Shown here: piece by piece, positions 2,799 through 43,329 of the stretch | How the letters are laid out: every line of letters begins with the position of its first letter | How positions within the stretch are numbered: the stretch's first letter is position 1 | Assembly: GCA_904063045.1 (NCBI GenBank) | Contig: CAJFCJ010000038.1 | Location: 38,315-102,314 of the forward strand | Direction: 5' to 3' | Origin: Dimorphilus gyrociliatus | Lineage: Eukaryota > Animalia > Annelida | DNA length: 64,000 bases | The notes under the pieces: generated by a model | What the model was told of the DNA's origin: nothing | The model's input: only the letters and a program-made list of their open reading frames with translations | The model's database searches: none | Position numbers and translations under genes: made by a program

Positions 2799-3165
2799 TC
2801 GATATTGACTTTTTGTTTAGTAATATTAGGCTTGTAGCTATGAACATGAGTTTAGAATTGTACAATACTAGTAAGGCCAGTTGGATATTGATCTAAAGTT
2901 TATATTGACTACAGAGTAGCAACGATGGATTTATACAAGTGTTATGACAATAAATGATTTTTATAAAAGTTGCAGAAATTAAAATACCATAAGATCATTC
3001 AACATTTTTCTGACGTAAATATCCATTAAATCCTCCATTGAGTCTGATAGAGAAATATTGTCATCTTGACAATCAAATGTAATTGATGTTGTTGTTTTGA
3101 AAATCTGAATATACAGCATTATCTGTGAGGATATCCTGTTATCCTCTTTACTAATCTAGAATGTA

Positions 3166-3601
3166 GGCATTGGGAGAAAACGGTCTGGTAGGCTAAAGTT
3201 TACGGTAAGGAAAAGGTGACAGATTTTGCAAAAAATAAAAATAGGTGTATGCCTTAAAACAATTCATCAAGGGGCTGAAAAGAAAATGTGAAGTTTAAAC
3301 AGTTAGAAAAAGAGCGGATTTCATGGCAAATAATCGCACCAAAATAAAAAAAATTCTATAACATCAAACAATCAGCGATAACCTAGATGATGTTTAAATG
3401 GACAGGAAGTACATCTTTCCGCAAAAACATGGTGGTTATAATACTGCAAGAAGAACTAAGAGTCTTTAGGTTGAATGGCATCAATCCTTTTGATTGTTCG
3501 GCAAAGAACCCCAGCCTAAATTGGATTGAGAACAATTTCAATCTGAGGATGAACATCTTAGGATGTTTTTTTCCCACCCTAGGACGTTTCTTCCCGACCC
3601 C
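3166..3601. mobile_element. MITE-like element with MULE-type termini
   Basis: Left end GGCATTGGGAGAAAACGG versus right end (reverse complement) GGGGTCGGGAAGAAACGTCC, with a second subterminal repeat GGGAAAAAAACATCC. Resembles the ends of the MULEs at 27.4 and 40.3 kb. No clean TSD. Confidence 0.5.
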
Positions 3602-4097
3602 AGATTTTGTTAGTGTAGTAAAAAAGAATAATTTAGGGACCATAAATAAAATGGATATGAACATGGATGATATATACAAATTATGTTTTATTAATCTTTC
3701 AAAAAGTAATATTATACTTGACCCTTCTATGAATAATGAAAAAAACATTGAAAAGTGTATAAATGGATTAATTGACATCATTCCTGCTAAATTAGAGACT
3801 AATGAATTACAACTTTATCATTTATCATTTCAGGAATACTTTTCAGCTAAATATCTAATAAAAGAGTTTGAGAACAAATCTAAACAAATAATTTGGATAT
3901 TGAAAACTTCATTAAATGAGGAGAAAACTTTGAATGAAGTGTTTAAAGAAAACAACAATTTAAGGATATATAATACTTTATATTTTGTTCAACAATATTC
4001 TCAATCAATATTTCAAAGTATTCTACTCTCTTCTCCAATTGCACAACAAATTTTTGATTGTAGTGAAAATGTAGAAAAGTATTTATCCAATGGGTGA
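3602..4097 (+). pseudogene. NLR relic: NACHT winged-helix/HD2 region
   Basis: LYHLSFQEYFSAKYL matches the NACHT-associated FxHLSFQEYFAA motif. No P-loop is present and the frame stops at 4097. Confidence 0.7.
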
Positions 4098-5606
4098 GAA
4101 AACAACAAGGAGATTAATTTAAAAAATGAACATTTAAATTATACTATACTTAGCCTATTAATAAAATTCAGAGGAAATCAAAATGTACTAAAATAAAAAC
4201 ATTAATATTAGAAAATCTTACTGATATACGTCTATATCTAGAGTTTTGTGGAATGGATTTAAGGTGATATGTGATAAACTCAAATCCCTTAAATATTTAT
4301 TATGTTAGATAATAAATTTTGATTTGCTCCATGAGTGCGTTCTTTGCTCCTCTTTATAAATGATTTTCCTTGATGACAATTTTTTGCAAGACATCTATAC
4401 TTTTGACCAGTTGTCTTCCAACCCTAATTACTTGAAAGTTATTATTCACAATTTCTTGGAATATGTCAATGATCCCATTCTCGGTTATTTTAGTATCATT
4501 TGCATTTGAATATGTTAGACCATCTTCATCCATGTTAACTTCATTTTCAGCATTATCCGTTGCATCTCTCTCTTCTATTTTGTATTATCTAGTCCTGTCA
4601 TTTGTAGAAGAGATTGTCTTTCTCAAGATCCAGACAGACTAATTTCCTCAAATCTGAAAGAAAATAATTATATATTTTCAATTGACCAGATGAATTAAAT
4701 ATTCTTGTGGATGATATATTTTTCATAAAGAAGCTCATTACATTGAAAATTTGCCAAATTTTCTTTTTTGTCTTCCATAAACTGTAAGTTTGAATTTTTT
4801 ACATTTTATGGCCATATTTGAAAGTATGGAGATTGGAAATGTAAAATTTAATATTTGAAAAGCAGTGAATAAGTTTGAAGTATCATATGATTGCAATCTA
4901 ACCAATATGAAGAGCATTGAAAATTTAATTACTTTTTTAACATTTATTCCTATCCATTTATCATAATTCCATGACTAGGAGCTAGTCTATATTTCTATTT
5001 TTTAAATTATTAATTGAAAACTCAATTGGGTAAGAAAACATTCTTATTGACTTGTGTATATCAAATATATTTATTCTACTTTCATTCAGCCTGAAAAACT
5101 GGTCTCGCTTCTTCTTTTTGCCATTGAAACCTTCACAGTGTTACTTGGTAAATTGACTTTGTTTCTATTTGTGTAATGATAAGTATTTATTAAAAGCTAT
5201 TTAAAACTGGATTAGAGTTTTTTCTATCAAGGTAGCCATAACTTTTAAAAGATGCACTTTTTTTGAAAATATAGCAAGATATTGAGCTCATGGTTCAATA
5301 AATTTTGAAAATATATTCTATAATTAGCAAAAACACTATTTTAGATTTGAAAAACCACAACAATTTTAATAAAGGAAAGACAAATAACATACTGAAAACT
5401 AGTATATAAAAAAAAGAAAACTGGTATACTTTTTGCAATTGTTAATTTTTATTTTTATAGTTGATATTTATATTCTTTTTATTTAGGTTATGAGTATTTT
5501 TCATAGTACTATTGACGTTTTCCATGACCCCCCTATTTTTACCATTTTTATCCTTGTGCTGAATTCTTATATTGTATTAAATTATAAGAGAAATTCAGAA
5601 ATTTCA

Positions 5607-8132: not shown

Positions 8133-8927
8133 CTATTGCATTGTACAAACACTTGACTTTTCTTTTTCTATTGCTTCTCTTCTCTTCCGCATCTCTGTGA
8201 GAAAATTCTCTTGCTGTTCTCTTTTACTTCTTCTTTTATCCTCCATAGCTTCAGTTGTCTCTAGTAATCTCTGGCTAGCCTGTTCTGCTATCCTGTGTAA
8301 ATGTTGAAAATGTTGTTGTGTCTCCAATTCGCGCGTCATCTGCAGTTCTCTCAATTTATGACCAAGTTTAATGGCTGTCGCAATTTTAAACTGCTGTTTA
8401 CTTTCCTCTATCATAGTTTCTAATTGTTTCCTAAAAACCATTTTCGCCATATCTTGCATTTGTCTACGCTCTTTTCTCCATGATAGTAAGTCTAGATTGT
8501 TTTCTTCATTTTCATCTTCTTCTTTTTCTTCAATTCTGAAAGGAGCCTTTGATATCTTTTTTTTCATTGTTGAAATATTACAAAAAGGATGGCTTTTTTC
8601 AATGCATTCAGAGCAAAGATCTTCTTGTTCATGCTTATTGCAATAAAATATGGCCTCTCTCTTATGGTAAACACAGCTTTTTTTTATGACCATTATATTT
8701 CTTTCATCAAAATAGAATGGCCTTTTTAAATATTCTATTTTCTTTACTTCTATTTGTTTACATGTAGGACAAGTCAATGGATCTGGAAGTCCAACCAAAC
8801 AATCCTTGCAAAATATATGCCGACATTCAAGCACCCTTGGGTTATTGCTCAACCATGATTCTAGACAAACAGCACATCTGACATCATCCTCCTGAAAAAC
8901 GAGTAGTTCAGATTTCTGATTACTCAT
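8133..8927 (-). CDS. Intronless RING-B-box-coiled-coil (TRIM/RBCC-like) protein ending in CaaX (SSVCTMQ*), 264 aa from MSNQK
   Basis: C3HC4 RING (CAVC...CRHIFCKDC...CPTC), B-box (CVYH...CNKH...CSEC...H), acidic linker, long coiled coil, terminal CTMQ. Confidence 0.88.
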   Translation of the reverse strand: MSNQKSELLVFQEDDVRCAVCLESWLSNNPRVLECRHIFCKDCLVGLPDPLTCPTCKQIEVKKIEYLKRPFYFDERNIMVIKKSCVYHKREAIFYCNKHEQEDLCSECIEKSHPFCNISTMKKKISKAPFRIEEKEEDENEENNLDLLSWRKERRQMQDMAKMVFRKQLETMIEESKQQFKIATAIKLGHKLRELQMTRELETQQHFQHLHRIAEQASQRLLETTEAMEDKRRSKREQQENFLTEMRKRREAIEKEKSSVCTMQ

Positions 8928-9779
8928 ATCAATTAGAAAGCAAAAGCAAAGAGCAGCAGTCACTCAAATTATCTGTTTCTGTTTGCTTTAGTGCCCATGG
9001 TGAGTTGGTTCTATTTTTCCATTATAACCATCTCACTATGGTTAATACAGTGCCATCTGCACAGTACAACACTGGTTGAATACTACTTATCTATTGTAAG
9101 ATACAGCTGACGAATGTATGTGTACAACTACCCCACCCCTTTAAGACGTTTCTCTCAAGTCCTATAGTTGTTATAGATGTGAATGAATTCTCAAAAATTA
9201 TATGAACATCTGCAGCAGGATCAATCATAAATATTAGATATATTAGTAATATATGAGCCCTTGACTCATAAATGTTCATTTCGATTTGGCAAGTTTAATA
9301 GAAATTCTTTCCACTCAAGATTATACTCTCTATCTTTATACTTCATTTCGAATATTTCATTTGGTTTTTTTTTCATTCTTTTGAAAATATATCTGGAATT
9401 TTTAATCAAATCATTTATATAATTGAAATGAAAAGATAAATATAAACTGCAATAATTTGTTCGAAATTGGGAACCATTTGAAAACTAGTCATATTACAGT
9501 TGTCACTATTAAAATTGCAGTAGAATAGATAATTAATTAGATGGTAAAAGAAAATTTGAACTTTGAGCTTCTAAAAAACTATGAATTGTTTTCTACTCAG
9601 AAAGAGTCATATATTCTCATTCAACAGATTTTGTGGAATATCTCAAAAGAGATTAGTCTTTTCTTTTGGTGATGTGCTTGCAAAAATAAGAGTTAATATT
9701 GATGGAAGAAAAAAGATATTACTGCCATCGAATGTGGCTGTAGATTATCATCTTCACAATGTTGGCAGATTTTGAATAT

Positions 9780-23911: not shown

Positions 23912-24343
23912 ACTATTCATACAACAGGGTAATAGCAGTAGGTAAAAATGTTAGAAGATTTCATTGGAGATGTTTGCTGTTCAATTTTTAATTTGAATTT
24001 CCAGACAATCTTCTCATGTAATTGAATGTTGTAGAATGATTTTTCTTGTATTGTAATTGTAATACCAAGTCAACATGAAAAAAAACTACTGTGTATTACA
24101 GTCTAGCATTTCTTTAGCTCACCAGTTAATCAATACAAAAAGTCTCTAACAAATACATTTTAACCTTACCTATATTTTACAAATCTCAGAGTGATCAATT
24201 ATAAAAGAATTACTATTTAAGACAATTTGAATAGTCCCTGAGATAAACAAATTTAATGCTTCCAAAAAGATTATAAATCTCCTGGATAGAGTGATATTTA
24301 GTAGCGAATGGCTGAATTTTATCACAAGCAGGTAATTTTTCTG

Positions 24344-24548
24344 GGGTCAGCAGAAAATATCCACAAATGAGAAATTTCCAGACAAAAATTTGGATTGAGA
24401 AATGGTTAGGCAAAAAAAACAGCAACTGATCTGAACTTAGGAGTGTCTCCTCTCAGGGTTAGGGGTAATGGAAAAGGTTAGGTATAGTGAAGGACTGGAT
24501 TAGAGTTAAGGTAAAAGCACTCATTTTTGGATGTTTTCTGTTGCATCC
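24344..24548. mobile_element. About 205-bp MITE with TTAGGG-like internal motifs
   Basis: TIR gggtcagcagaaaatatccacaa versus ttttggatgttttctgttgcatcc; colinear with 26117-26322. Confidence 0.75.
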
Positions 24549-24699
24549 ATTTTGTTTTTATAATAGAATGTATCATCTTTTCAGGTAGGAGAAACAATAA
24601 TCAGATAATTGATTATGTTTTAGCCTTTGTCAACATTAGTTTTCAGTCAGTTATGAAGCAACTATGCCTGAGAAATCTATATTCAACTGCAAAACTCTA

Positions 24700-24955
24700 T
24701 TTGGAGAGATGAAGATTGTTGTGTGTGGATTTGCAGAAATGGCAGAATTCACTTGGTTAATTGTCCTAACCTTTTGCAAAAGTGGTTGGTGTTTACCAAA
24801 TTATGATCTGACATCTGATAATCTTTGCTGTAAATGCATTTTAAATTGTAATTTTTGCCAATTGCATTCAGCAAATTCTAGAACTGAATAAAGTGGAACA
24901 AGTATGAGCCATACTTGTTTTGAAAAGCAAAATGGAAAGTCTTGGGGACAATTGG
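24700..24955 (+). pseudogene. Second broken paralog of the Cys-rich gene (3' end of exon 5)
   Basis: Aligns to 19070-19320 (...aattctagaactgaa...ggaaagtcttgggga versus aattctaggacagaa...ggaaaatcatgggga). Confidence 0.7.
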
Positions 24956-25081
24956 TAAAATAACAATTTATATGTTATTTTATGAATTAAAAACAGTCCA
25001 AATTGACAGCATTTCCTTATAATTGTGTGCACTTAGATATAGTGATATATCAATACTTAGACTTTAGATATAAGGGTACAT

Positions 25082-25237
25082 TAGAAAGACTTATATTTTA
25101 GAGGAATTAGACTGGTGCAACTATAGAAATACTTATATTTCATAGGAATTATAGTGGTGGAACTTTAGATAGACTTTTATTTTGTAGTGTTAGCTTTTAG
25201 TAGTTTAGAAAGAACTCTATTTTGTAAGAAATAGACT
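25082..25237. repeat. Degenerate minisatellite, about 42-bp unit, about 4 copies
   Basis: tagaaagacttatattttagaggaattagactggtgcaacta / tagaaatacttatatttcataggaattatagtggtggaactt / tagatagacttttattttg... / tagaaagaactctattttg... Confidence 0.7.
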
Positions 25238-26116
25238 CTTTGACTGTAACAGATGGTGGCTACTTGGGAATTAACAAAGGAACAAAGAACATGGAAAAGA
25301 TGCATGTCAAATGTCAGATGCTGATGAGGCAGGCCTGTTTGCTGTGATACATGTTTGGCATGTGTCCCTAATCTTAGGATTATATTTTATATGTGTGATA
25401 TAACAAGTCTTTCATATTTTTGTTACATGAGAATTATGAGACCATCAGATTTCAACTTTGTAATCCTTTGACCACTTGAACCCAAGCTTGGGAAATGTAT
25501 AAAAGGAAATGCATTTCCCTAGCTTGTCAGTTCAGTTCTTTAACTGTTAACTGGTTGTAGAAACTCATTTGCTCAATAAATATTATTTAAATGAAATACT
25601 GGGATTTTGTTGATTAATTTCTACCAAAATTACATTTCTTAAGACTACTTGTGGACGAATTTGAAAGGTTCTATTTGTTTGAGTACTTTGGTAAGTTAAT
25701 AAATGATTGAAAAGGACGAATACTGTTCTGAAGAAGCAGAAATTCCTACAATTACAATACAACAAAGTACAAATTGTGATAAATGATATTTAAAAACACC
25801 AATTGATTTATTTGGTGTTTTTTATCATTTAAGAATTTTTACAAATTTTTAACATATAAAGTAAATGACAGGAATATTGGAACACCTCAAATGTTTATTG
25901 GCCAAATATTAAAAATCTTTTTCATTATGAAAAAAGATAATTTTTTTTATTTTTTCAGTATTTAGTAATAGGTTAAACTTGCAATTTTATATAAATTTCT
26001 TAAAAATAGCAGTTAGGTAAGTTTTTACATACTTTTTTTTATAGGAATTACCATAATTTTCTTATTTTATTTTCTTATTTGACCACATGACATGTTTATT
26101 GAAATAATTTTAAATA

Positions 26117-26322
26117 GGATCAACAGAAAATGGCCCCAAGTAGGATATTTGAAGGCAACTTTTTGGGTTGAGAAATGGTTAAGAGGAAAAAGGCATCTAT
26201 TGATTTCTAGTTAGGAGGGTCCTATCTAAGGCTTAGGGGAAATGGATATGGTTAAGGATACTTAGGTGATGGTTTAGGGTTAGGGTAAAACCATGCTTTT
26301 GGGGCCGTTTTCTGTCGCATCC
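26117..26322. mobile_element. 206-bp MITE with TTAGGG-like internal motifs
   Basis: TIR GGAT-CAACAGAAAATGGCCCCAA versus reverse complement GGATGCGACAGAAAACGGCCCCAA; internal ggtttagggttagggtaaaa. Confidence 0.8.
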
Positions 26323-26344
26323 ATGTTATTTTTTATCTATTTTT

Positions 26345-27320
26345 GTATGTGCCACCCTCTCTTTCTATACATTGGCTTATTCTACAGCCCATTCCCTAAT
26401 ATAAACTTGGCAATAAGAGTGGATTTCTGTTGATAACCTCATAGCAGCATTTCTTAATCTTTTCCCACAGTTCATCCTCTGCCTCAAACTATGGGCCATC
26501 ATACACCATTGTCCTGGTCAGGTGTCGCATGTTTTCTATTGGGCTGAGATCAGTTCTCCTTGCTGGTCAATCAATGGGTTTGATGTTATTGTTTTTAAAG
26601 GCTTTTTTTTCATTTTTCTTGAGGTGTGACAGCCAGCATTGTCTTGGTGGAAGATTTACTGCCTGCCCATTTTTGCCTCAATTTTTTCTATGACAGGCAG
26701 AACATCTTCCACAATGAAGGAGCTATAGTTTTCAGCATTCAGCTTTCTGCTTATCCTCCAGAGTTCAAATATGCCATCAGAGGATATCAACCCCCACACC
26801 AATACTCCACCTCTCCCCATATTTTTCATCACCCTGAAGTCCTTTTCACTATTGCTGGTCCAAGTCCTAAAATCATCAGGTCCACTTAGCTAAAAATAGC
26901 CTTAGCAGTAAAAATAACCCTAGATCAGTCTAGATTTTTGCTAATAATTTTGAGGCAATATTTTTTTCTGCATTTACAATCTTAAGAGGTGAAATCAGTT
27001 CTTTGTCTGACTCTTTTGTATTTGAAATTTTGTCTTTTCAGTTCTCTCTGAATTGTTCTGTTGCTTACATCTACTTCTAATTCCTTTAATATCTTTGCTG
27101 CTGTCACTCTTTGCTTGTTATCTTCCAGTTTCTTCACAATCCTTTTCATCCTGGCTATCTCTCTGTTGGAAAGCTTCTTTGGACTGCTCCTATTGTCTTC
27201 TGGCTGCTTATTCTTCAGGATGTTGCTTACTGATGATGGTGCCTTTCCTAAAACTCTTGCTGCTCCCCTTAATTTCCCTATTTCACTATGTTTCTTGATT
27301 ACAGTAATTTTTAATATTCA
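26345..27320 (-). mobile_element. Near-full-length decayed Tc1-like (DD34E) transposase
   Basis: HTH region (ARVLGKAPSSVSNILK...VSNRTIQRELK), GGVLVWGLIS, FHQDNAGCH, ID*PARRTDLSPIEN, ...CIEREGGT. 34 residues between D and E once a frameshift in an A-run is corrected; several stops. Confidence 0.88.
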
Positions 27321-27422: not shown

Positions 27423-30005
27423 GAATTATGGAGAAAACATCCACTATGTGAAGAAAATATTAAAAAATACTTTTTCAAATTTAAATTATTATTGATTTTG
27501 AGATATATCCAATATATTCCCATAATGCAATCACTTTTGGTAGTCATTTTGATATCCAGACAGGAAACAGTTCAGGGATCTTCTATGTTTTTCATGGAAA
27601 GTGAATATTGTGCACATTTCATCTACAATTTTTCAGAATTTTTTGCAGTTTGAAATATATTTCACTATTGAAAACCATCAGACAAAACACAAACTTTAGA
27701 ATTGATATCAGTAAGTTATAGAATATTGTGTTGAAATGATTTATTTCTAAATTAGCTTTATTTTTATAGCAGCCATTTTGTTTATCATTGTTGTTGATTG
27801 TTTAATTTTTAAATTTAAACAGTTGGTTATTAAAAGAGATTCCAAATTGAACATGGCACCAATTTGTTACTTTTATGAAGAGAGAATATATGGAAGACAG
27901 AATCATGAGAAATGTCAGCTTTGCTGTCATTTATTTAAAATACACAAGAAATGTTTGGAATATAAAGGTCTGTTTAAGTTTTTTGTCACTATCCTTACAA
28001 ATATGCTTTTATGTTTTTTCACAGATCAATCATTTTATTGTAACATTTGCTGTGACATATCAATGAAGAAATGCATTGTTACACTGCAAAGGCTACCTTC
28101 TAGTGCATATGTTAATGAAAAAATAAGTCAAACACCAAATTTTCATACAGTAAATAATAGAAATGAGCAAACTATTGTTTGTGAAAATCATTGTGGAAAT
28201 TCAAGTGGAAATGATACAAATGGCAGTATTATGGAATCAAACAATGTTTTAGTTGAAGATCTTCCAGCTCAACATAATAATATGATGGAAGTTTCATTTA
28301 TAGTTTCTCCAAAATCAGATTGTGAGAAAGAAAGTTATTCATTTAAAATCTTAAAGGGAATGAGCCAGAAAGGAAAAGATTTGCTACTTTTCAACAATTT
28401 CTGCTACAATATTAAAGAAAAAAGAAACAAGACAACATTCTGGATATGCAGTGTTAGGAACAAAAGAAACAAATGTTCAGCAACAGATAGTCAGCATGGG
28501 AACAGTTTTTATCCTGGAAAGTTATCCCATTCTCATGAAAGAGTACCTGATCTGGAAAAAAAAATAATGATTAGGAATGAACTAAAAAATGCTTGTAATA
28601 AAGATATCAGTAGTTCAGGAAAACATTTAGCTGAAGATGTTCTGGTGAAACATTATAGTTCTAGTGAAGTTATTCCATCTCTAGATAATTGTACAAGACT
28701 GGCAAACTGGACAAGAAAGAAGTTTAGACCAGCTGAACCTCAAAGTATTCACTTCAACTTGGCTAAAACTTTTATTCCTGATGATTTTTTACAAATGGAT
28801 ATACAAATGGAGAATGATAGAATACTAATATTTTCAACTACAAAGCAAATTGAATTATTATCTAAAGGCAAAATATGGTTTATGGATGGCACATTTAAAT
28901 GTGTGAAAGACCCTTTTTATCAACTTTTTTCTGTTCATGCATTTATAAAAAAAAATGGAGAAATAAAACAAATTCCATTGGCTTTTGCTTTTATGCAATC
29001 CAAGAGAAAGATAGCCTACAAGAAATTATTTAAGGTACAATAATTTTGCATTTTAAATTGAATAATCTAATTTGTTAAATTAACAGGCAATACAAGATTT
29101 AACAAATGGGCATAGCCCCAAAAAAGTTGTTGTAGACTTTGAAAAAGCTATTTGGAAAGCACCATCATTCACTTATCCTGAAGCAAACATTAAAGGGTGT
29201 GTTTTTCACTGGACACAGGCAATATACAGAAAGATTCAAGTAATACTTTAATTTAGCATTTGAGCTCTAGATAGAACTGACATATTTATTTCCAGGAATT
29301 AGGATTATGTAAGATGCACAAGGAGAAAAAAGCTGAATATAGAATCATGAAGAAATTAATGGCATTACCATTCCTGCCCTCTGATCTGATAGAACCAACA
29401 TTTAAGACTATTAAAGAAATAAGTCCTATTGAAATGAAGTCTCTATTGGAGTATGTTGAGACACAATGGATAAATGGATTTTATAAACCAGAGGTATGGT
29501 CTGTATAAGGACAAATAATGGTCTTGAAGGCTGGCATCACAGGCTTAACAAGAATCTTTGCTGTAACACTGCATTCTATTTGCTTTTAGATGAACTGAAA
29601 AAAGAAGCTGATCTGATAAAGCTATATAAAAAATTACTGAGTGAAAAGAAAATTTGTAGACAGCAAAGAAAAGCATATCAGAATATTCAAAGCAAAATAT
29701 TCAGCTTATGGGAACAATTTGAAATTGCCTCAATTACCTCCCTGGACTTACTTGATAAAGCTTCTGACATTTATTCACCAGTTTGAAATACCTTTATTCT
29801 TGAATGTTGTTACACTGTTGTCAATCATTCCTGTTATAATTCTTGTTTTTACTTAATCAATATATTAATATTTAAATATTTGTAATTCTTATTATTCATT
29901 TTTTACCGTCAAATTGCCTAAAAACTCCATCTATCAAATATCTTATATCTTACTTGGAAGTTCTATAGTGGACGTTTTCTCCAGTGGATGTTTTCTCCTG
30001 TACCC
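27423..30005 (+). mobile_element. MULE DNA transposon E1 (PHD-FLYWCH-DDE), defective
   Basis: Flanked by gtttcaata (27414-27422) and atttcaata (30006-30014), a 9-bp TSD with 1 mismatch. TIR repeat GGAGAAAAC(A/G)TCCACT at both ends. Confidence 0.85.
27853..29786 (+). pseudogene. E1 transposase, 4 exons (introns 27968-28024, 29035-29086, 29240-29295)
   Basis: FMDGTF, VVVDFE, GCVFH and RTNNGLEGWH motifs. Frameshift near 29505 (WSV*); second PHD Cys changed to Tyr (CYFY). Confidence 0.88.
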
Positions 30006-31752: not shown

Positions 31753-34172
31753 GGGGCCAGGACATTTCGGCCCAGGACATTTCAGCCCACTTTTTGGACA
31801 TTTCGGCCCACTTTGGGACATTTCGGCCCAGGACATTTCAGCCCACTTTAGGACATTTCGGCCCAGGACATTTTGGCCCACTTTAGGACATTTTGGCCCA
31901 TTTTAGAGCATTAATATTCAAGAATATAACTTTCCATTTTATGATGGATTATGTTTATTTTTTCAATAAGAAAGGAAACAATTTCAAAACAGTAAAAGAA
32001 TGATATAACATACAATAACAAAAATGCAGAGTAAGAAATGTTAACTTTTAAAAAATATTTAAATGTACAAGTCCATCCAATAATTCATCCAAACTCAGTT
32101 CTCTTTCTTCAAATTTACTCCACAACTGAAATATTTTGAATTGTAAATCTTGATACTTCTTCTTTTGTATCTTTCTTAACTTTTTCTCAGACAATAACTT
32201 TTCAAAGATTGCTACTAACTCAGCTTCTCTTCTTAATTCTTTTATGAGGGAATACAAGTTCTCATCCATGTTCAAGTTTTTGTTAAGCCTGGAATGCCAT
32301 GCCTCAACATGATTGTTTGTTCTCACAGCCAATTGATAGACAGACCAGAATTTAGGAGGCCAAATGCTGCTTTTAATAAATGTTTCTTCAATATAATCAA
32401 GCAAATCTGAAAAGAATTTCTTTTCACAAAGTTCTTCTTTTATTTGAAAAAACTTTTGTTCAATAAATTTTGCTGGAAGATAGGCCAAACACATCAATTT
32501 TTGTAACATTTTCCCTTTATATTCATTTTCTTTATAATCATTAATGTATCCAAGTTTCTAACAAAAAATTTTCTATGAATATTTAATTGTTTGCAGTATT
32601 GTTTAATCTACCTGAATGTTTCTCAAAATTGCTTGCTTGAAATGAAAAGAGCATCCTTGAAGGTCAGAATTAGGAAACTGGTCTTTAAGTGCCATCCATA
32701 TAGCCTTTTCAAAATCAAGAACACATTTCCTGGGTGTTTTATCATTCAGTAATTTTCTTATCTCCTGTGTTCATTTATAAGGAGTTAAATTAAAAGTGAA
32801 TATCATACTGAAAAATTTCAAACCTGAAGAACAGCAATATAGCAGTTTTTCTTTTTGCTACTCATCAGAACATAAGTCAATGGAACCTGCTGATATTCAT
32901 CATGTTTTTTCAAGAATCCATGAATTGAAAAGAGTTGATAAAATGGATCTCTAACAACTTTAAAAGTTGCATCAATGAAACAAATTTTACAACATTCAAG
33001 TAATTCTATTTGATGATTTGTACCAAATATAATACATCGATTTTTCTTTTCTTTTATATCTTTCAATAAGAAATCCATTGGAATTTCATCTAGATTTATT
33101 TCAAAGTGTAAATCTCTAGGATGCTTTGGTCTTCTATTCTCTTTATGGAAGCTTTTCTTCTTAGTGATTCTAATTCTGGTAAGTCTTCAATATTATCTTT
33201 AAATTTAAGAATAATATCTTCTGCTATTCTTTTACCAGTTTTGTCATTGTCACAATTTGCCATTTCTTTCAAATCCATTCTTGATTGAAGAACATTTTCC
33301 AGATTTTTATACAACTTATGAAGATGGTTTCCATTTTTTACAATGAAATTTGATCCTTTTTGTATTATGTATGCAGGACAAGAATTTTTAGCATATCTTT
33401 GAGTACATCTCCAGGTAATTTAACTCTCAGTTTTTCTTTTCATGGAATACAAACAATTTTTGTGTAGAAGTAAGTCTTTACCTTTGGTACTTCCACCAAC
33501 AACAATTTTGAATTCATCTGTTTCAGTTTCCATAATGTTACACTGCTCATCCATCTCAAATGAAGTTTCATCACTGATGTCAACTTTCATATCTCTCATA
33601 TCTTGCCTATTATCAGGAAGATTCACCTCTTTTTCAATATTTGATGATTCAGTTGAATTAAAGTCAAAAGAGAGTCTCAGCTGTCAAAAATAATTTAGAG
33701 TGAGATATTAATATTTTTTAAGCATTGAAATTACCTGATATGTGTTGTTTTCACTTGCATAATCCATTGAAGATTCCATATCAATATCACTTTCTTGAAG
33801 AATTTCACTCTGATGATAATTATCTATTTTCCACACCTCAATCCACACTTCCAACAATTTTTCAAATTCATGCTGTGGTTTCTATCAAAACTAGGATGAA
33901 ATGCAAGAAAACAAATATACCCTCTACTTTTTTCACAACAGGAAAAGGAAATTGCAAAAAATAGTAAAATATACTTTTGAAAAAAAGAAAACTGGTAATA
34001 TGAAAATGTTTCAAATTTTTTGAATGATTTATATATATATATATATATATGTGGAACTGCAATTGAAAATTACATGTTTTTTCTTGTTATTTTTCTAACA
34101 TGGGGTGAAATATTTTGGGCGGAAATGTTCCAAAGTGGGCCGAAATGTCCTGGCCCGAAATGTCACTGCACC
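31753..34172 (-). mobile_element. MULE DNA transposon E2 (FLYWCH-DDE), defective
   Basis: TSD cactaaata at 31744-31752 and 34173-34181 (an 8-bp reading is also possible). TIRs are built from GGACATTTCGGCCC repeats, about 9 on the left and about 4 on the right. Confidence 0.92.
32048..33880 (-). pseudogene. E2 transposase with introns (32765-32823, 32558-32611, and about 33682-33735)
   Basis: FIDATF, LDFEK, GCSFH and RTNNHVEAWH motifs; nonsense at 33420 (KTES*ITWRC) and a frameshift near 33145. Confidence 0.88.
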
Positions 34173-34789
34173 CACTAAATACCATTAATTAGTCAATGCA
34201 TCAGCATGTATTGTTTTCAAAAACTATGGACCAAAAGATGATATATGTGGTAATTGATTGGATGTTTGCTTTGAAAACTTAATTATGTCAACATCAAAGA
34301 AATAATCACCTTTTTTTTATAGATACAGTTGTAAACCCTGAAAAATGTTCTCCTACTTTGGAAAAAGAATGTGCTCCCAGTTTAGTAACAAGTGTCAAAT
34401 ATGCAGAGTTTGGATGTTGTTATGTTAATGGAAAGTGTTTTTATGACAATACAGCAGTTATAGGCTTTAATCAGGTAGCCGCAATTGGAGCTTTTACAAC
34501 ATTTCCAGATGTACATAGTGCAATAAGTTTGAAAGATTGTGGAAGAATTTGCTTATCTCAAGCTGATTCTGTGTGCTTCTCCTTTGATTTTACCAGTACA
34601 GTTTGTAAGCTTAGCAGCACTGAGTGTTCATATAGTGCTGGTTCTTTGACAATTTCAGTTTACAGAAGGATTGGTTACAGGCCACTAATGTGTTACAATT
34701 CAAATTGTGGAAGTACAGACAAATTTAAGAAAAAAAATTTGAAAGAATGTAGTACAACTTGTAAAGACGGTATGTTAATAAGAAGATAA

Positions 34790-35385
34790 ATGATATTTCA
34801 CATTTTCAATGTTTAAGTGTTTAAATCAATATAACAACATTGCATTTTTAACTTTGAAAGCAATACAGATATATATTTTATAAACTTTTTTTTCTTTCTT
34901 TGACCTTTTGCCAATGTTTAAATTTTCACCAGAGACAAGGGTTAGGTTATGATTTGGGTAAAAAACACATGCTTTTGCAGATGTTTTCTGTTCCATGCAA
35001 AGTTGATGACCTAAGCTTCTAGTAGAAATTGGATATTCTCTGTTGGAAATGGGGGAGTAACCAGTCTTTAAATAAGTTAGATATTAGTCTGGCTGATATT
35101 ATTACTATATGCTGAAAAGGTTTTCCACAGAAGAATCCAGAATAGAAAGTTTAAAAACTTTAAAATGATACAAAAAAATTAAAAGAAACATATTTTTTCA
35201 GTGAGTTTGGTTAAAAATTTTTGAGTTGTTACATGGTTTATCTTATCAATTGCGATATTCTTTCATGATTTAATACATCTTTAATGTTTATAAGTAAACA
35301 TTGCTGAGATTGTCGTTTTTGATATTGTCCCCAAATCAATTTATCATCATTAATTCTTATACCAACATTATTTTCATTATTTTGA
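34790..35385 (+). repeat. Segmental duplication, copy 1 (copy 2 at 46490-47445)
   Basis: Colinear blocks such as agagacaagggtta, gagtaaccagtctttaaata and catcattaattcttataccaacattattttcatta. Copy 2 carries two extra inserts. Confidence 0.88.
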
Positions 35386-36350
35386 ATTTTTTGAAAAATT
35401 TCAAAATTCATATTTCCCACTTCTCCAATAAGTCCTCCAATATTTGAATAATCACTGTTTATTGGCCTATCAATAATGATATTCAGATATTCTCTTTGGA
35501 ATGAATTTTGAAATTTTTCAATACTAAGAGAAAATAGATTTTGATTAGAAATAACAACTTTATGTTTATGTTATTGCACAATGTACATTCCAATTTTTTG
35601 TTCATTATAAGAATTATGACCATTGAGTGAGCAAATTGGAATATTATCAACAAATAGGCCTTTTGTAGTTGTTGTCATATTGATGATATTGGAATAGAGA
35701 TTGATTTCATGCATATAATAATCATCGAGTAATTTTCCAGAAATTTCAATTTTCTCCTTTTCAAATTCAATAATTTGAATTCTTTGATCAGATTTACCAA
35801 CAATATCATAACAAATTAAATTAGTAGTTTGAGATTGTTGATCATAGATCAGTTGAGAAAAATGCGGATCGCCATTTACTAAACTTTGTTGAGTTGCTTT
35901 AAAGATAAAACTATATTCATATGTAAAAATGCCTGGAATTCTGTCTATAGAACAATTTGCAGTAAATATTGCCTCATAATTCAATGGTGTAGAGTAATCA
36001 GCCTCCATTGTAAAATCAAATGATGAACCTTTTGAACAAACCACGCTATAATAAACATATATACTCTTTCTATAAACTTTTTTTCCCTACCTAGGCCTAA
36101 AGTTCCAGAATCAGCACCAGTTAAAACAATATGATTAAATTTTTCTTCAACAAAAAGCTATCATTAAAAATCATTTGAATTATTTAATATTGCGTTGGTT
36201 GATTGTTTATGAAAAAAATGTAATTACGAGCATTCTGCAGTATGAATATGATCACCACCATCAAAAATAAAAGTAAAGTTTGTCTGTTCTTTGTTATAAG
36301 GAGGATCAATGTAACTTAAAAAATAGAGCATAGGAAAAAATCCATCAACT
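35238..36350 (-). pseudogene. 3' part of a gene with an ITIH-C-terminal/VWD-like GDPHF domain
   Basis: LVNGDPHFSQLI...ICYDIVGKSDQRIQII...LLDDYYMHEI...GGLIGEVG; a single TAA at 35571-35573 interrupts an otherwise open last exon. Confidence 0.7.
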
Positions 36351-37189
36351 AAATAAAAAAAAGTTAATTTATATAATATACAATTTTATTTATGAGTGAA
36401 AACTGGTAATAACAATTGATTAGACGGCTTTTATCACAATTGCGAAAAAGTATTTTCTGTTTGTATATCTCTTCAGAATTATCATATTTGCATTCCAAAT
36501 AACCTGTAAATTGATCATCAAGAGGAATTTCACCAGGAAGGGATTTTTGAGGAAAGAAATTTCCAGGAATGATGTTTCCAAAAAGGAAATCCTCTCGAAA
36601 AACTGTAACATTATTTCCCCAAATGTTTGGATTACTCAATCTTAAATTGAGGATCTACATTTTCATCAGTCTGTAACAGACTTCCATTAATCCGTTCCTG
36701 ACCCTAGAAATGCCCCAAATCCTACCTTGAAGTTCTATCACAACTCCATGCCAACTGTTTGTTATAGTATGGTGGTCAGTTCACACAGATCAATTTCGGC
36801 CTGTTTTTCTGATAACCAGTATATATATATTCACACAGAAAAGATTGTTTGTTTGTAGTTTTTTGCTAAGGAAATAGACAATTAATTGTGTGTGTTTTTT
36901 TGCTTTTATAAAAAAGTACATAATGGATTTATTAATGATTTATTTATTATTCATTCATTCAATATCAAGGTAATTAATTAGAACAAAAGAAGTTAGTGGA
37001 GAAGTAGGGAGAAAAAGTTTTCACTTCTGTTCCACTGCAACAAAACTTGTATGATTTCTGAGAAAAATTTTCTTGAATTTTTCAATTTCTTTGTGCTTGA
37101 ATTAGAGTTTATCATCGCTCCCATAATAAGCCAAAAGGGCCATTTTTAATAGTCGCTCCGCCTTCTTAAGGTTCTCAAGAGGAATATAT

Positions 37190-37409: not shown

Positions 37410-37640
37410 GAGTCATTTGAAAGTAATGCTAGTCAAAAAGACAATTCCACTGATGATTTTATTTCAAAATTTTACCAAATGGCAGTGAAAAAAGTAAACA
37501 TCTTCTCATCTACAAAGGATAAACATTTATCATAAAAATGAAAAGAAAAGCAGCCACAATTTGGACCTGTTCAGTTTGTAACAAAAATAGAAAGTATTCT
37601 GCAAGTATCTACCAAAAAGGACCCTATTTTGTAATTGGTA
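37410..37640 (+). mobile_element. FLYWCH fragment of a fourth MULE
   Basis: KHLLIYKG*TFIIKMKRKAATIWTCSVCNKNRKYSASIYQKG is homologous to the FLYWCH domains of E1 and E3. Confidence 0.7.
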
Positions 37641-38356
37641 AAATGAAAACACAAACATTCACCATTGAGTCTCTCAAAACCTAAGTGTTCCTCTTGCAGA
37701 GCTGCTATTGAAGGATCTGTAATTGTCAATACAGATTTGGATAACTTACACCTTTATTTTGGAAATCATCACTAAACTTTTCTGTATTCCGATTTTTTTT
37801 GTCATTCTGAATTGTAAATTTCAGCCTACATTTTTTTTTCTAAAAATGTTTCCAAATACAGTGTCAATAGAAAAAATCTCTATTTAGCGCCCTCTTTTGA
37901 GCGATAACATAACAATAGCTATACTTCTGGATATTCTTCAATGATTTTCTTCTAAACAAACTCTTCATTAGTAAACCAGAATTTTTAGTTATTTCTTTCA
38001 GTAAACAATAATCCGGCATTATTAATGTTGGATGTTGACAAAGTTTTATCAAATAAAAGGAAAAGTAGGAATTTGTTTAAAACAATCGTATGATCTTTTG
38101 CAGAAATGCTGCAAAATTGTTAAGATTTTTAGTTTAAATGAACAGTTGCAGGCTTATTTATCTAAAATCAACAATACTCAATCTAAGTTACAATACAAAA
38201 TAGTATGCGTATTTAAAAAGCTTTAGAAAGTAGTCATTTATTGATATTAGTAAAATTAGACCTATAAAAACATTATTTAATAATCATATCTGAGGTGATT
38301 CTCCTCAAGAAATGAGTGAAAAAGTTTTACTAAATGCTATATATCTCAATAATTGA

Positions 38357-39670: not shown

Positions 39671-40260
39671 AAAACAGATTGTTTTAAGTTACCTTAACTT
39701 TAATAAACTTTCAAAATAGACATTACTCATACGTAAATTTTATCTCATATTATTATATCCTTTTTCTCAGTAAAATTAAACAAAGTGATAAGTTTGCCAA
39801 CACTTTTGAAGGGACATTTAAACAATTGTAAACAAGTTTTAGATAGAATTTCACCAGTTCATTAAATTATTTTGAGATGCTGTTCACACACAATTGAAGA
39901 AACTGAGTATGATGTATAAAATTTAGAGTGGTTGGCATCCATTCTACAATTTTAACAAAACAACTCAAAATAAGAAAACTTCAATATTAGGCTTATTGGA
40001 ATGTAACTTGTATGGGAATATTAGGAATATAGGTTGAGATTAGGTCTAAACTCTTTACTAAGAATTGATCATATGCTTTAGAATTAAATTTAGAAATTGC
40101 TCCCACAATTCTGCCTTTGTTACTCTTTAAATAGATAGGTGGGCTAGGATAATAACTATTAGGTTGGCAATGATAATAGTCCTTGCCACACCCTAATAAA
40201 GAATGTCATTCTTGTTATTAGGTTAGATAGTGGTATTGTTATAGGTTATGTATAGTAATA

Positions 40261-42990
40261 GAGTTGGGGTGCGAACGTACCTGGGTGTGAACGTACCCGG
40301 GTGCGAACGTACCCTGGGCGGGTGCGAACGTACCCAGGTACGTTCGCACCCTATTTTTATATTTATTTTATTTTTGAATTTTTGAATAAAAGATTTAGCT
40401 ATAAATCTAAAAGTATGTATTTAAAAGACTAAATATTATACTAAAAAACAATAAAGCTTGACAAATGATATTTATGCTGGAGAGTAGATATGGGATGTCT
40501 GCATTAATAGATCAATTGATGTCAATTTGTTCAACTTGAAATCATCCCATAAATCAAAAATTTTCTTTTGGATGTCAATATACTTTTTCTTTTGATGTTT
40601 GTAAATCCTTTTTTCTGACAGTAATTTCTCATAAACTGCAATCAACTCAGACTCTTTTTTTAGCTCATCAACCAGCATGTAAAAAGAACCTTTAGCAGGC
40701 AGCTTACTATTCATTCTTTGATGCCATCCTTCACAATCATTATTGGTCCTAATAGACAAACCAAAAACTGACCAGTTATTTGGTTTCCATAATTTATTTT
40801 TGATCCAGTTTGTTTGGAAGTATTGCAGCAGGTCCAAAAATCTATTTTTTTCACAAAGTTCTGCATTTATGCTGTCAAATGTTGGTTGAATAATATGTGC
40901 TGGCAAGAATGGCAGAGCCATCAATTTTCTGAAATCTTTCCAATCATTTCCTTTTTCTTTGTATTTCTTTACATAGCCAAGAGCCTATTCAATAATATAA
41001 GTTATTTAATAGATAATGTTATATATATTTGAATGTAACTGACTTGTATTTTCCTGTATACTGCTTGTGTGAAATGAAATACACAACCTTGAAATTCAGT
41101 GAGGGGATATACTTTTGATAATGCTTTCCATAGTCCTTTTTCAAAATCCATTGTAATTCTTTTTGGATGAAAATCATTGATAAGATTGTTGATATGCTAC
41201 AAAAAAGCAACTTTATTTATCATCACTTTTGAAGAGATAATATGAAATATTTACTTGAAATGCTTGTAAGTATGCTTTGGTATGCTTTGAAGTCAGAAAA
41301 ATAAAAACAAGAGGAACTTGCTTCATATCACCACTCTTCTTAACAAATGAGTGAATAGTGACAAGTTGATAAAATGGTTCTTTTACAATCTTGAAAGTAC
41401 CATCAATGTACCAACAGTTGGATTTTGATAATAAATTCAGCTGATGGTTTGTTGCAAAGATTAAAATTCTTTCTCCATTTTCACAAATATCTTTCTGCAA
41501 AAATTCATCAGGCAAAAATGTTTCATCTAAATTAAAGTTGTACACTTTAGGTTCCACTGGCCTAAACTTTTGTCTATTTGAGTTTGCCATTCTCTTCAAA
41601 TAGTTGATATCCGGAAGACAAGTTGCATTGGGTTCATAGGATAGAAGAACTTTTTCAGCAATGCTTCTTCCAGATGTTTGATTATCACTTCTGCAAACAA
41701 TTTTCAAATCTGTTTTCACTTTAATATCCACTTCTAAATTCTTTTTTCTGTTGTGATTATGTTCCAAATTGCCTTTGAGAAATAAATTTCCATTTTGTCT
41801 TATTCTGGCCACACATCTTTTCTTCTTACTTCTCACACTGCACACCCAAATAGTACTTGATGGTGTTTTATGTTTAACAACAAAAGAATATCCATCATTC
41901 AGTAAAATGTCATGTCCCTTTCTACTTCCTCCTTTTACAATCTCAAAATCACTTTTTGTGGATGATTCACAATATTCTTCAGCATTCTCTTCAACTTCCT
42001 CCAAAGAGTCTAGGTCCATTGATTGGCATTCTGAAAGAACATGATTTTCATCCTCCAATATTGATTCCTCAACTGCAGCAATCTTATTTCTTTCATCAAT
42101 AAAGCTTTCTTCAGAATTTACTTTGAATTGATGAATTTCCAGATTAGTTAACTTCTTGAGCATGACAGTACATTTTCTTTTGTTACAAGGTTTGCAAATT
42201 GGTATGTTATGTGTTTCTATAAGAATATGTTAAAAAATATAATTACATGAAAGCTGATTAAAGAGTTACATACCTGTGCATTTCCTATGAATAAGATTCT
42301 TACAAAGGCTGCATTTCAAATATTTTTGCCTTCCATAAATTGTTGAATGACAATTGTGACATTTGAAAGCCATTTTTTAATCTTCAATCAAATGTAGATG
42401 GTTATCTAAAAATATTTCCAGTTATCAATAAATTTCCTTTCCAAATATTCAAAATGGCTGAAATTTTATTTATGAAAAATATTCAGCTTTTTCACAATTG
42501 AAGATAGTATATTACATCAAAATATCATGAATCAACAATCTCAATGATTAGATATAAATACTCACTTCTGTTGAAGCTTCCAAGAAGAACTTTGTCCAAA
42601 TTTATTCAGTAAATATAGCTTTACTTTTGCAAGGATAAATATTCCAAGTGAAAGTTTATTTAATAAAACTATCACTATTAAAATGGCTGCTATTTCACTT
42701 TCAACAACATTTTCTTTTAAAGTAGTAATTTAATATTGATGGGATATGTATTCTATTTAATATCTGCATTCTATCAAATCAATATATTAACAAATATATA
42801 ATGAAGGAACAGAAGGAAAAAAGGGTGTCAATGTACATGTTTATTCAAAAATTCAAAAATAAAATAAATATAAAAATAGGGTGCGAACGTACCCAGGTAC
42901 GTTCGCACCCGCCCAGGGTACGTTCGCACCCGCCCAGGGTACGTTCGCACCCGGGTACGTTCGCACCCAGGTACGTTCACACCCGACCCC
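40261..42990 (-). mobile_element. MULE DNA transposon E3 (PHD-FLYWCH-DDE), apparently intact, 2730 bp
   Basis: Perfect 9-bp TSD atagtaata (40252-40260 and 42991-42999). TIRs of about 140-150 bp made of GGGTGCGAACGTACC repeats plus a shared AT-rich inner arm (ctatttttatatttattttatttttgaatttttgaataaa). Confidence 0.95.
40472..42373 (-). CDS. E3 transposase, 575 aa after splicing; exons 42373-42274, 42216-41255, 41196-41044, 40984-40472
   Basis: Exon lengths 100+962+153+513 = 1728 nt with no stop. PHD (CHNC...CSLC...HRKC...CKPC), FLYWCH (WVCSVR...C...H.H), YIDGTF, MDFE, GCVFH, RTNNDCEGWH. Introns of 57, 58 and 59 nt, all GT-AG. Confidence 0.92.
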
Positions 42991-43329
42991 ATAGTAATAT
43001 AGTTTATGCATAAAGTATTATGAAAGTTGTTCACTAGGTACAGCGGAAAAGATGAATAGGAGAAGTAAAGAGCTGTTGTACACACAGTTGTATGATGAAA
43101 TACAAAAAGGAGATGAGAAGGTTTTGATGGCTATAGAGGTGCATTGAGATTCCTAAGGTTTAAAACATATTGCAATCAAAACAAGTGTAGCAATGTAGTA
43201 GGTGAACAGCTGAGAGCAGCATCAAGACTATCAATAAAAGATATGGCAGAGAAAGAATTAATTCAAAAATTGACCTCATGATGATGGCGAAGTGTAAAAA
43301 GACACATAAGGTGCGGAACGCAAAATTAC

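Follow-up and report, generated by a model that had tools for sequence, protein, structure and literature searches.

A probably very young, autonomous Mutator-like element with a PHD-like finger and short introns in the annelid Dimorphilus gyrociliatus

The window analyzed here is a 64,000-nt stretch of the Dimorphilus gyrociliatus genome (assembly GCA_904063045.1, contig CAJFCJ010000038.1, positions 38,315 to 102,314 of the forward strand). At 40261-42990 it contains a 2730-bp Mutator-like element (MULE) with its gene on the minus strand. The organization of this element raises two questions: (i) whether it belongs to a family of autonomous transposons that has moved recently and (ii) whether, as a first-pass annotation proposed, its introns gate its activity by splicing and its N-terminal finger steers it by chromatin reading. 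On the first question, we consider it highly likely that the locus is one copy of a very young autonomous animal MULE of the Phantom/Muta kind, with a five-exon gene (one non-coding and four coding exons), recent amplification, and ordinary constitutive introns. The family is transcribed and normally spliced, and no fewer than 16 full-length copies are almost identical; very recent movement is therefore probable, and the family may still be mobile. On the second question, both ideas remain speculation.

The boundaries agree with the first-pass coordinates for an intact element with a perfect 9-bp target site duplication (TSD), long terminal inverted repeats (TIRs), three introns of 57-59 nt, and a 575-amino acid (aa) open reading frame (ORF). 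The ends are organized as follows.

40252-40260, unstranded: left copy of the TSD, ATAGTAATA; the same 9-mer stands at 42991-42999.
40261-40390, unstranded: TIR at the 3' end of the gene, with the motif GGGTGCGAACGTACC four times in direct and once in inverted orientation, then an AT-rich part; period 16 in Tandem Repeats Finder (TRF).
42840-42990, unstranded: TIR at the 5' end of the gene, with six motif copies; one 21-nt unit longer than the other TIR.
42991-42999, unstranded: right copy of the TSD, ATAGTAATA, a perfect 9-bp direct repeat.

The TIRs measure ~130 and 151 bp, and their arms (40267-40390 and 42840-42984) are complementary at 96-98%, with one indel of a 21-nt subrepeat. Across the 64-kb window there are 11 occurrences of the 15-nt motif GGGTGCGAACGTACC, all within the two element ends, versus 0 in shuffles; each TIR carries a tandem array of four or five copies, with an inverted one at its inner edge. 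Tandem arrays were confined to the TIRs in the TRF scan, with no minisatellite before the 3' TIR. A 9-bp TSD (8-10 bp are expected) and long TIRs with subterminal repeats are features of the MULE superfamily.

The first-pass annotation had described one copy; a search of the genome (77.9 Mb, 349 contigs) revealed many. We identified 18 near-full-length copies that are 99-100% identical, as well as others that are truncated or internally deleted. At least 16 copies retain both ends, flanked by perfect 9-bp TSDs, and all 16 TSDs are different (80% A+T). With 16 different flanks, the copies are unlikely to be duplicates created by the assembly. The mean pairwise difference among the 16 full-length copies is 0.09% over the internal region. 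Eleven of the 18 near-full-length copies encode an identical 575-aa protein, two differ by a single missense change, and a frameshift or stop disrupts the other five; exon 2 is identical at 19 loci. Element length varies from 2706 to 2793 bp with the number of subrepeats. The internal-deletion derivatives are as expected from abortive gap repair. There is no large family of miniature inverted-repeat transposable elements (MITEs) with these TIRs: a genome search with the TIR returned essentially the ends of known copies (counts are lower bounds). The near-identical copies with distinct TSDs, the deletion derivatives, and the spliced transcripts described below bear out the earlier view of a young, apparently autonomous element.

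The coding part of the gene was modeled by testing every GT..AG pairing near the three frame breaks, and the 5' part was added from RNA contigs, giving the following structure.

42566-42839, minus strand: 5' non-coding exon; contigs of run X2 cover 42594-42839, and joints leave at 42566 (donor AA|GTGAGT).
42406-42565, minus strand: intron in the 5' untranslated region (UTR), 160 nt, or 42458-42565, 108 nt, with the alternative acceptor; joints in X2 with CT..AC ends.
42373-42274, minus strand: coding exon 1, 100 nt; ATG at 42373, residues 1-33 plus one nt, with the first six C4HC3 zinc ligands.
42273-42217, minus strand: intron 1, 57 nt, phase 1, GTATGT..TTATAG; splits the finger.
42216-41255, minus strand: coding exon 2, 962 nt; last two finger Cys, acidic linker, FLYWCH, and the N-terminal part of the DDE domain, with D305.
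41254-41197, minus strand: intron 2, 58 nt, phase 0; joint 41196 to 41255 in X2, loose end in X1.
41196-41044, minus strand: coding exon 3, 153 nt; D371 and C392xxH395.
41043-40985, minus strand: intron 3, 59 nt, phase 0; joint in X1 and X2.
40984-40472, minus strand: coding exon 4, 513 nt including TAA; W476, E490 (codon 40730-40732), and a C-terminal helical region.

The spliced model totals 1728 nt and is stop-free over 575 aa plus TAA, with all three coding introns GT..AG. Given that 64 GT-AG combinations keep the frame open in silico, the open frame alone is little proof of the model; the chosen sites are those with the best consensus. More direct evidence comes from RNA, in the form of assembled Logan contigs from two runs, X1 (a marine metatranscriptome) and X2. 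A 219-nt contig from X1 aligns with 0 mismatches to 40936-40983 plus 41043-41196, with intron 3 removed, and extends by 17 letters identical to 41255-41271; intron 2 is therefore also removed, and the contig spans exons 4, 3, and 2. Joints with CT..AC ends in X2 connect 40983 to 41043 at depth 152 and 41196 to 41255 at depth 110.9. The shorter side of the RNA joints at introns 2 and 3 is 48-66 letters. We infer that X2 is a transcriptome because its coverage is restricted to the element (depth 0 in both flanks) and because alternative 5'UTR joints are present.

The 5'UTR intron is an addition to the earlier gene model. One donor after 42566 is used with acceptors at 42405 or 42457 (X2 depths 16.3 and 19.4), and support is moderate because each joint has just 30 letters on its shorter side. 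With a donor at this position, the transcript would start in or near the 5' TIR and the gene would have at least five exons.

Joints of this kind could also come from processed (intronless) genomic copies. This source was rejected for the 30 genomic loci examined: a comparison by 30-mer junctions shows a joined exon-exon junction in none of them, unspliced boundaries occur in 20-25 of them, and intron 1 is present in all genomic copies. The exon 2/3 and exon 3/4 junctions also agree with relatives that have uninterrupted ORFs, the proteins P0002 and P0004, which align across both without gap or overlap. A subfamily that is 81% identical (L029) gives further, independent support to the model. 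Its exons are 82-88% and its introns 56-74% identical to those of the element; mismatches at the three codon positions number 41/38/93 (exon 2), 6/3/12, and 17/7/35, a third-position bias. The single internal exon indel is 9 nt, the introns have indels of 1 and 2 nt (not multiples of three), and a 55-nt gap in exon 4 is simply where locus L029 ends. This pattern points to purifying selection on the reading frame between subfamilies. A contig of a related subfamily in X2, over 41863-42340, has depth 485 versus 110-150 for the exact-family contigs; this sister family may be more strongly expressed, with contig depth a poor measure of expression.

From its N-terminus, the encoded transposase would comprise a PHD-like C4HC3 finger, an acidic linker, a FLYWCH finger, and a DDE (Asp-Asp-Glu) domain with the (C/D)xxH motif and Trp of MULE and hAT transposases. 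Two of these domains were placed as follows.

41753-41926, minus strand: FLYWCH zinc finger (WRKY-GCM1 fold), a DNA-binding domain; exon-2 residues 97-154, from Pfam.
40730-41413, minus strand: DDE catalytic domain, spanning exons 2-4.

FLYWCH scores 30.7 bits in exon 2 (gathering cut-off 23.6). Exon 2 matches positions 2-50 of the Pfam MULE profile at 13.7 bits, and exon 3 matches positions 63-98 at 27.6 bits, a score that equals the cut-off; Transposase_mut scores 20 bits on exon 3, and exon 4 alone matches no Pfam family at E <= 1. Two introns lie inside the DDE domain, so the three catalytic residues stand on three exons, just as first annotated: D305 (IDGT) in exon 2, D371 (DFE) together with C392..H395 in exon 3, and E490 (NNDCEGWH) in exon 4 along with W476. 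The two Asp are 66 residues apart, the second Asp and the Glu 119, with the Trp 14 residues before the Glu and C392xxH395 21 aa after the second Asp. The criteria applied here, (C/D)xxH 15-45 aa after the second Asp and Trp before the Glu, are those of PMC5499845, where the DDE triad, the (C/D)xxH motif, and the Trp were found to matter in Muta1. An alignment with seven relatives conserves W-x-DGTF (D305), DFE, GCxFH, W476, and RTNNxxEGWH (E490). The exact protein is absent from a collection of 5.8 billion proteins, in which the best match is 39% identical; the nearest named matches are FLYWCH-MULE proteins of anchovy, scallop, coral, and aphid.

The finger occupies residues 5-44 with the spacing C-x2-C-x12-C-x2-C-x4-H-x2-C-x8-C-x2-C, and intron 1 interrupts it after the sixth ligand; the C4HC3 pattern and its split were thus correctly called. 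Its assignment as a PHD finger held only in part. Exon 1 alone, which encodes only half of the finger, scores 18.9 bits for C1_1, 17.6 for PHD_4, and 13.5 for PHD, all below the Pfam cut-offs; of the domains expected by the first-pass annotation, FLYWCH stands above its cut-off, MULE is matched, and the exon-1 half of the PHD-like finger is sub-threshold. The best PDB matches of exon 1 are PKC C1 domains (E 0.07, not significant). Nevertheless, the finger has a homologue at the N-terminus of P0004 (36% identity, pairwise E 1e-5), and that homologue is a Pygopus-type PHD (Pygo1/2 PHD structures, E 3e-6; precomputed PF27108 PHD_Pygo match). In human Pygo1 the K4me2 cage is formed by W366, Y341, and D352 (PMC2726290). 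Chained sequence alignments would place Leu, Phe, and Gly, respectively, at these positions in the element, and the last finger loop has 8 residues versus 21 in P0004. We therefore describe the domain as an apparently derived PHD-like cross-brace finger, with no support in the sequence for methyl-lysine reading. In the relative P0002 (L032, ENA ERZ25766962), a PHD_Pygo finger is called as a separate 67-aa ORF (2776-2979) that ends 21 nt before a 575-aa FLYWCH-MULE ORF (3001-4728). P0002 may have an intron or a break here, at the same site that intron 1 occupies in the finger of the element.

By its features, the element is closest to the described animal Phantom/Muta MULEs (Marquez & Pritham 2010), such as Muta1 and Muta5 of Aedes aegypti. 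The Aedes Muta families have 8-9-bp TSDs, TIRs of >100 bp with 9-15-bp subterminal repeats, 2-3 exons, FLYWCH and DDE domains, and identical copies (PMC5225508, PMC5499845, and PMC6446971). Shared between Phantom/Muta elements and this one are TSDs of 8-10 bp, TIRs of >100 bp with short subterminal tandem repeats, a FLYWCH domain N-terminal to a DDE domain with (C/D)xxH and a conserved Trp, few short introns, and several identical copies alongside deletion derivatives. The catalytic residues of Muta1 are D214/D283/W401/E419 (PMC5499845), and spacing is comparable: 69 residues between the two Asp in Muta1 versus 66 here, and 18 versus 14 between Trp and Glu. Unlike Phantom/Muta elements, this one has an extra N-terminal PHD-like C4HC3 finger, an annelid host, three coding introns plus a 5'UTR intron, and few or no detected MITE-like derivatives.

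The finger and the host group also recall Rehavkus, a MULE-related group in Repbase with a PHD finger, a 9-bp TSD, arthropod and annelid hosts, and a minisatellite before the 3' TIR (PMC6446971). By its description, however, Rehavkus has that minisatellite, for which TRF finds no counterpart here, and no FLYWCH domain is described for it, whereas the element matches the Pfam MULE profile and has FLYWCH-MULE proteins as relatives. The same domain order (PHD_Pygo-FLYWCH-MULE) occurs in P0004 (ENA ERZ25766962) and in P0014 from the coral Montipora foliosa, which are 36-39% identical to the element over FLYWCH and DDE. P0004 and P0002 differ in being single uninterrupted ORFs that lack introns 2 and 3, and their fingers differ in keeping the cage Trp, a long last loop, and a significant Pygo PHD match. 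A 2006 paper noted C-terminal PHD fingers in MULE transposases of the WRKY/GCM1 type (PMC1702500). We found no paper describing the N-terminal PHD-FLYWCH-DDE order, which is present in database proteins of a coral and of a eukaryote in a metagenome assembly.

By analogy with Muta1, the transposase would bind the 15-nt subterminal repeats in the ~130-150-bp TIRs, the element would then be excised through flanking hairpins, and reinsertion with a 9-bp staggered cut would follow. Its introns would be ordinary short constitutive introns of the host type.

Several observations weigh against this account. The 361-nt left flank is single-copy in the genome and no paralogous empty site was found; no insertion polymorphism was found either, and the RNA runs do not cover the flanks. 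Domain scores come from exon-by-exon Pfam searches, and the reading of X2 as RNA is our own. Among the splice junctions predicted by the first-pass annotation, RNA contigs join exactly at introns 2 and 3, but no joint for intron 1 was seen in the exact family, its removal appearing only in contigs of diverged relatives. In the X2 contig, 34 diverged letters stand for 29 + 5 letters of exon, so that the net shortening is exactly 57 nt; for a low-depth X1 contig of 96% identity it is 58 nt, one more than the model predicts. Finally, identical copies are no proof of current activity: Aedes Muta5 has them, yet it did not move in yeast (PMC5225508).

This last point leads to the most serious alternative, that the family looks intact but is no longer mobile, being silenced or carrying a subtle defect, its burst over. 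We regard this as possible but rather unlikely. Five of the 18 near-full-length copies are already broken, and the transposable elements (TEs) of D. gyrociliatus are reported to lie in closed-chromatin islands (PMC7854359). Against it stand the spliced transcripts, the 11 identical ORFs, and a divergence as low as 0.09%. A very young autonomous family remains the reading that we favor.

The genomic setting of the copies bears on whether the finger directs integration. The D. gyrociliatus genome has been reported at 73.8 Mb in ~350 scaffolds, with DNA transposons of the Mariner and MULE types, and with TEs that are either old or derived from very recent bursts (PMC7854359). Young copies lie mostly in TE-rich DNA. 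A different and diverged MULE lies within 1.5 kb of at least 7 of the 16, and another repeat is common to three. One copy (G000:C47:57655-63381) is nested in a diverged MULE gene, with host exons 1-3 on one side and exon 4 on the other. Another (G000:C112:75773-81472) sits in a satellite array, both 1.5-kb flanks being the same tandem repeat, 92-97% self-similar at several offsets. Contig C112 holds four family copies within 56 kb (23933-26634, 34735-36923, 69888-70998, and 77273-79972), a cluster that may be a TE island or reflect local hopping, and other MULE families at 3163-3912 and 8786-9631. This setting fits the published TE islands in closed chromatin (PMC7854359) and argues against promoter targeting; targeting, selection, and local hopping are not separated by it.

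Could the finger nonetheless read a chromatin mark and steer integration, either to active promoters or to TE-rich closed chromatin? We think this improbable. In its favor are the homology to the Pygopus-type finger of P0004 and the association with MULEs (at least 7 of 16 copies, above the chance expectation if ~6% of the genome is near a MULE), to which the copies nested in a MULE, placed in a satellite, and sharing a common repeat can be added. On the other side, W366 and D352 of the Pygo1 cage are replaced, the last loop is reduced from 21 to 8 residues, exon 1 remains under every Pfam cut-off with non-significant PKC C1 domains as its best structural matches, and clustering in TE islands is equally well explained by selection against genic insertions, local hopping (as for the four C112 copies), or repeats having been assembled into small contigs. 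DNA binding is another possible role of PHD-like fingers in transposases, as in the cysteine-rich domain of piggyBac, which also counts against chromatin reading. The steering proposed at first is thus unsupported, with the cage Trp and Asp apparently replaced, the finger half sub-threshold, and the copies mostly away from promoters in TE-rich DNA. A variant, in our view a long shot, is that the degenerate Pygo-type finger tethers the transposase to the chromatin state of TE islands, with unmethylated H3K4 or another closed-chromatin mark as candidates. If true, tethering would steer new copies into "safe havens" of a very compact animal genome and would account for the position of at least 11 of the 16 young copies in or beside other repeats.

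The introns invite comparison with the Drosophila P element, whose transposase gene also has short introns. Retention of an intron in such a system would give a truncated protein that still has the DNA-binding domain. Gating of this style, with one intron retained in the soma and full-length transposase made in the germline only, seems very unlikely for the element. The introns do interrupt the finger and the DDE domain, retention of any one would truncate the protein, the 5'UTR has alternative acceptors, and the contigs are compatible with minor retained forms. However, the P element belongs to another superfamily, no P-like regulatory element was seen, the contigs of the two runs gave no sign of regulated retention, and spliced forms are those assembled in the RNA contigs and dominate them. 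The introns have consensus sites, and at 57-59 nt they are close to the host median of 66 bp, in a species whose machinery is tuned to short introns (PMC7854359). Moreover, the positions of introns 2 and 3 are common to two MULE families only 39-56% identical in protein, which suggests inherited structure. The earlier proposal of splicing-gated activity is not supported by canonical, host-sized introns that RNA contigs lack (intron 1 only in diverged relatives) and whose positions recur in other families.

A domesticated, MULE-derived host gene might be suggested by the purifying selection between subfamilies and by the spliced, expressed gene, but the multiple copies, each with TIRs and its own TSD, and the deletion derivatives refute it for practical purposes.

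With 11 identical intact genes, spliced transcripts, and 0.09% divergence, the family identified here can realistically be regarded as a candidate live transposon. Activity is known for very few animal MULEs; the worked example is Muta1, active in yeast (PMC5225508 and PMC5499845). TEs make up <5% of the D. gyrociliatus genome (assembly 78 Mb), and the family could offer a clean system for studying how a compact genome tolerates a TE burst, as well as a potential tool for transgenesis or mutagenesis in a spiralian model. The PHD-like, FLYWCH, and DDE architecture is worth recording, although it is not unique to this genome.

More broadly, searching the genome with the exon-2 protein gave 785 first-look candidates, and E was < 1e-55 for every one of the 125 scored. 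Further FLYWCH-MULE genes number several hundred and fall into many families, several of which also have identical copies (e.g., a 398-aa open frame at nine loci). MULEs appear to form a large, recently active part of the mobile DNA of this genome. Two other FLYWCH-MULE genes occur in the window, at 27853-29783 (+) and 32060-33602 (-), with 39-56% protein identity to the element; both share the positions of introns 2 and 3. The former has a frameshift near 29505, and a FLYWCH-like fragment lies at 37463-37648 (+).

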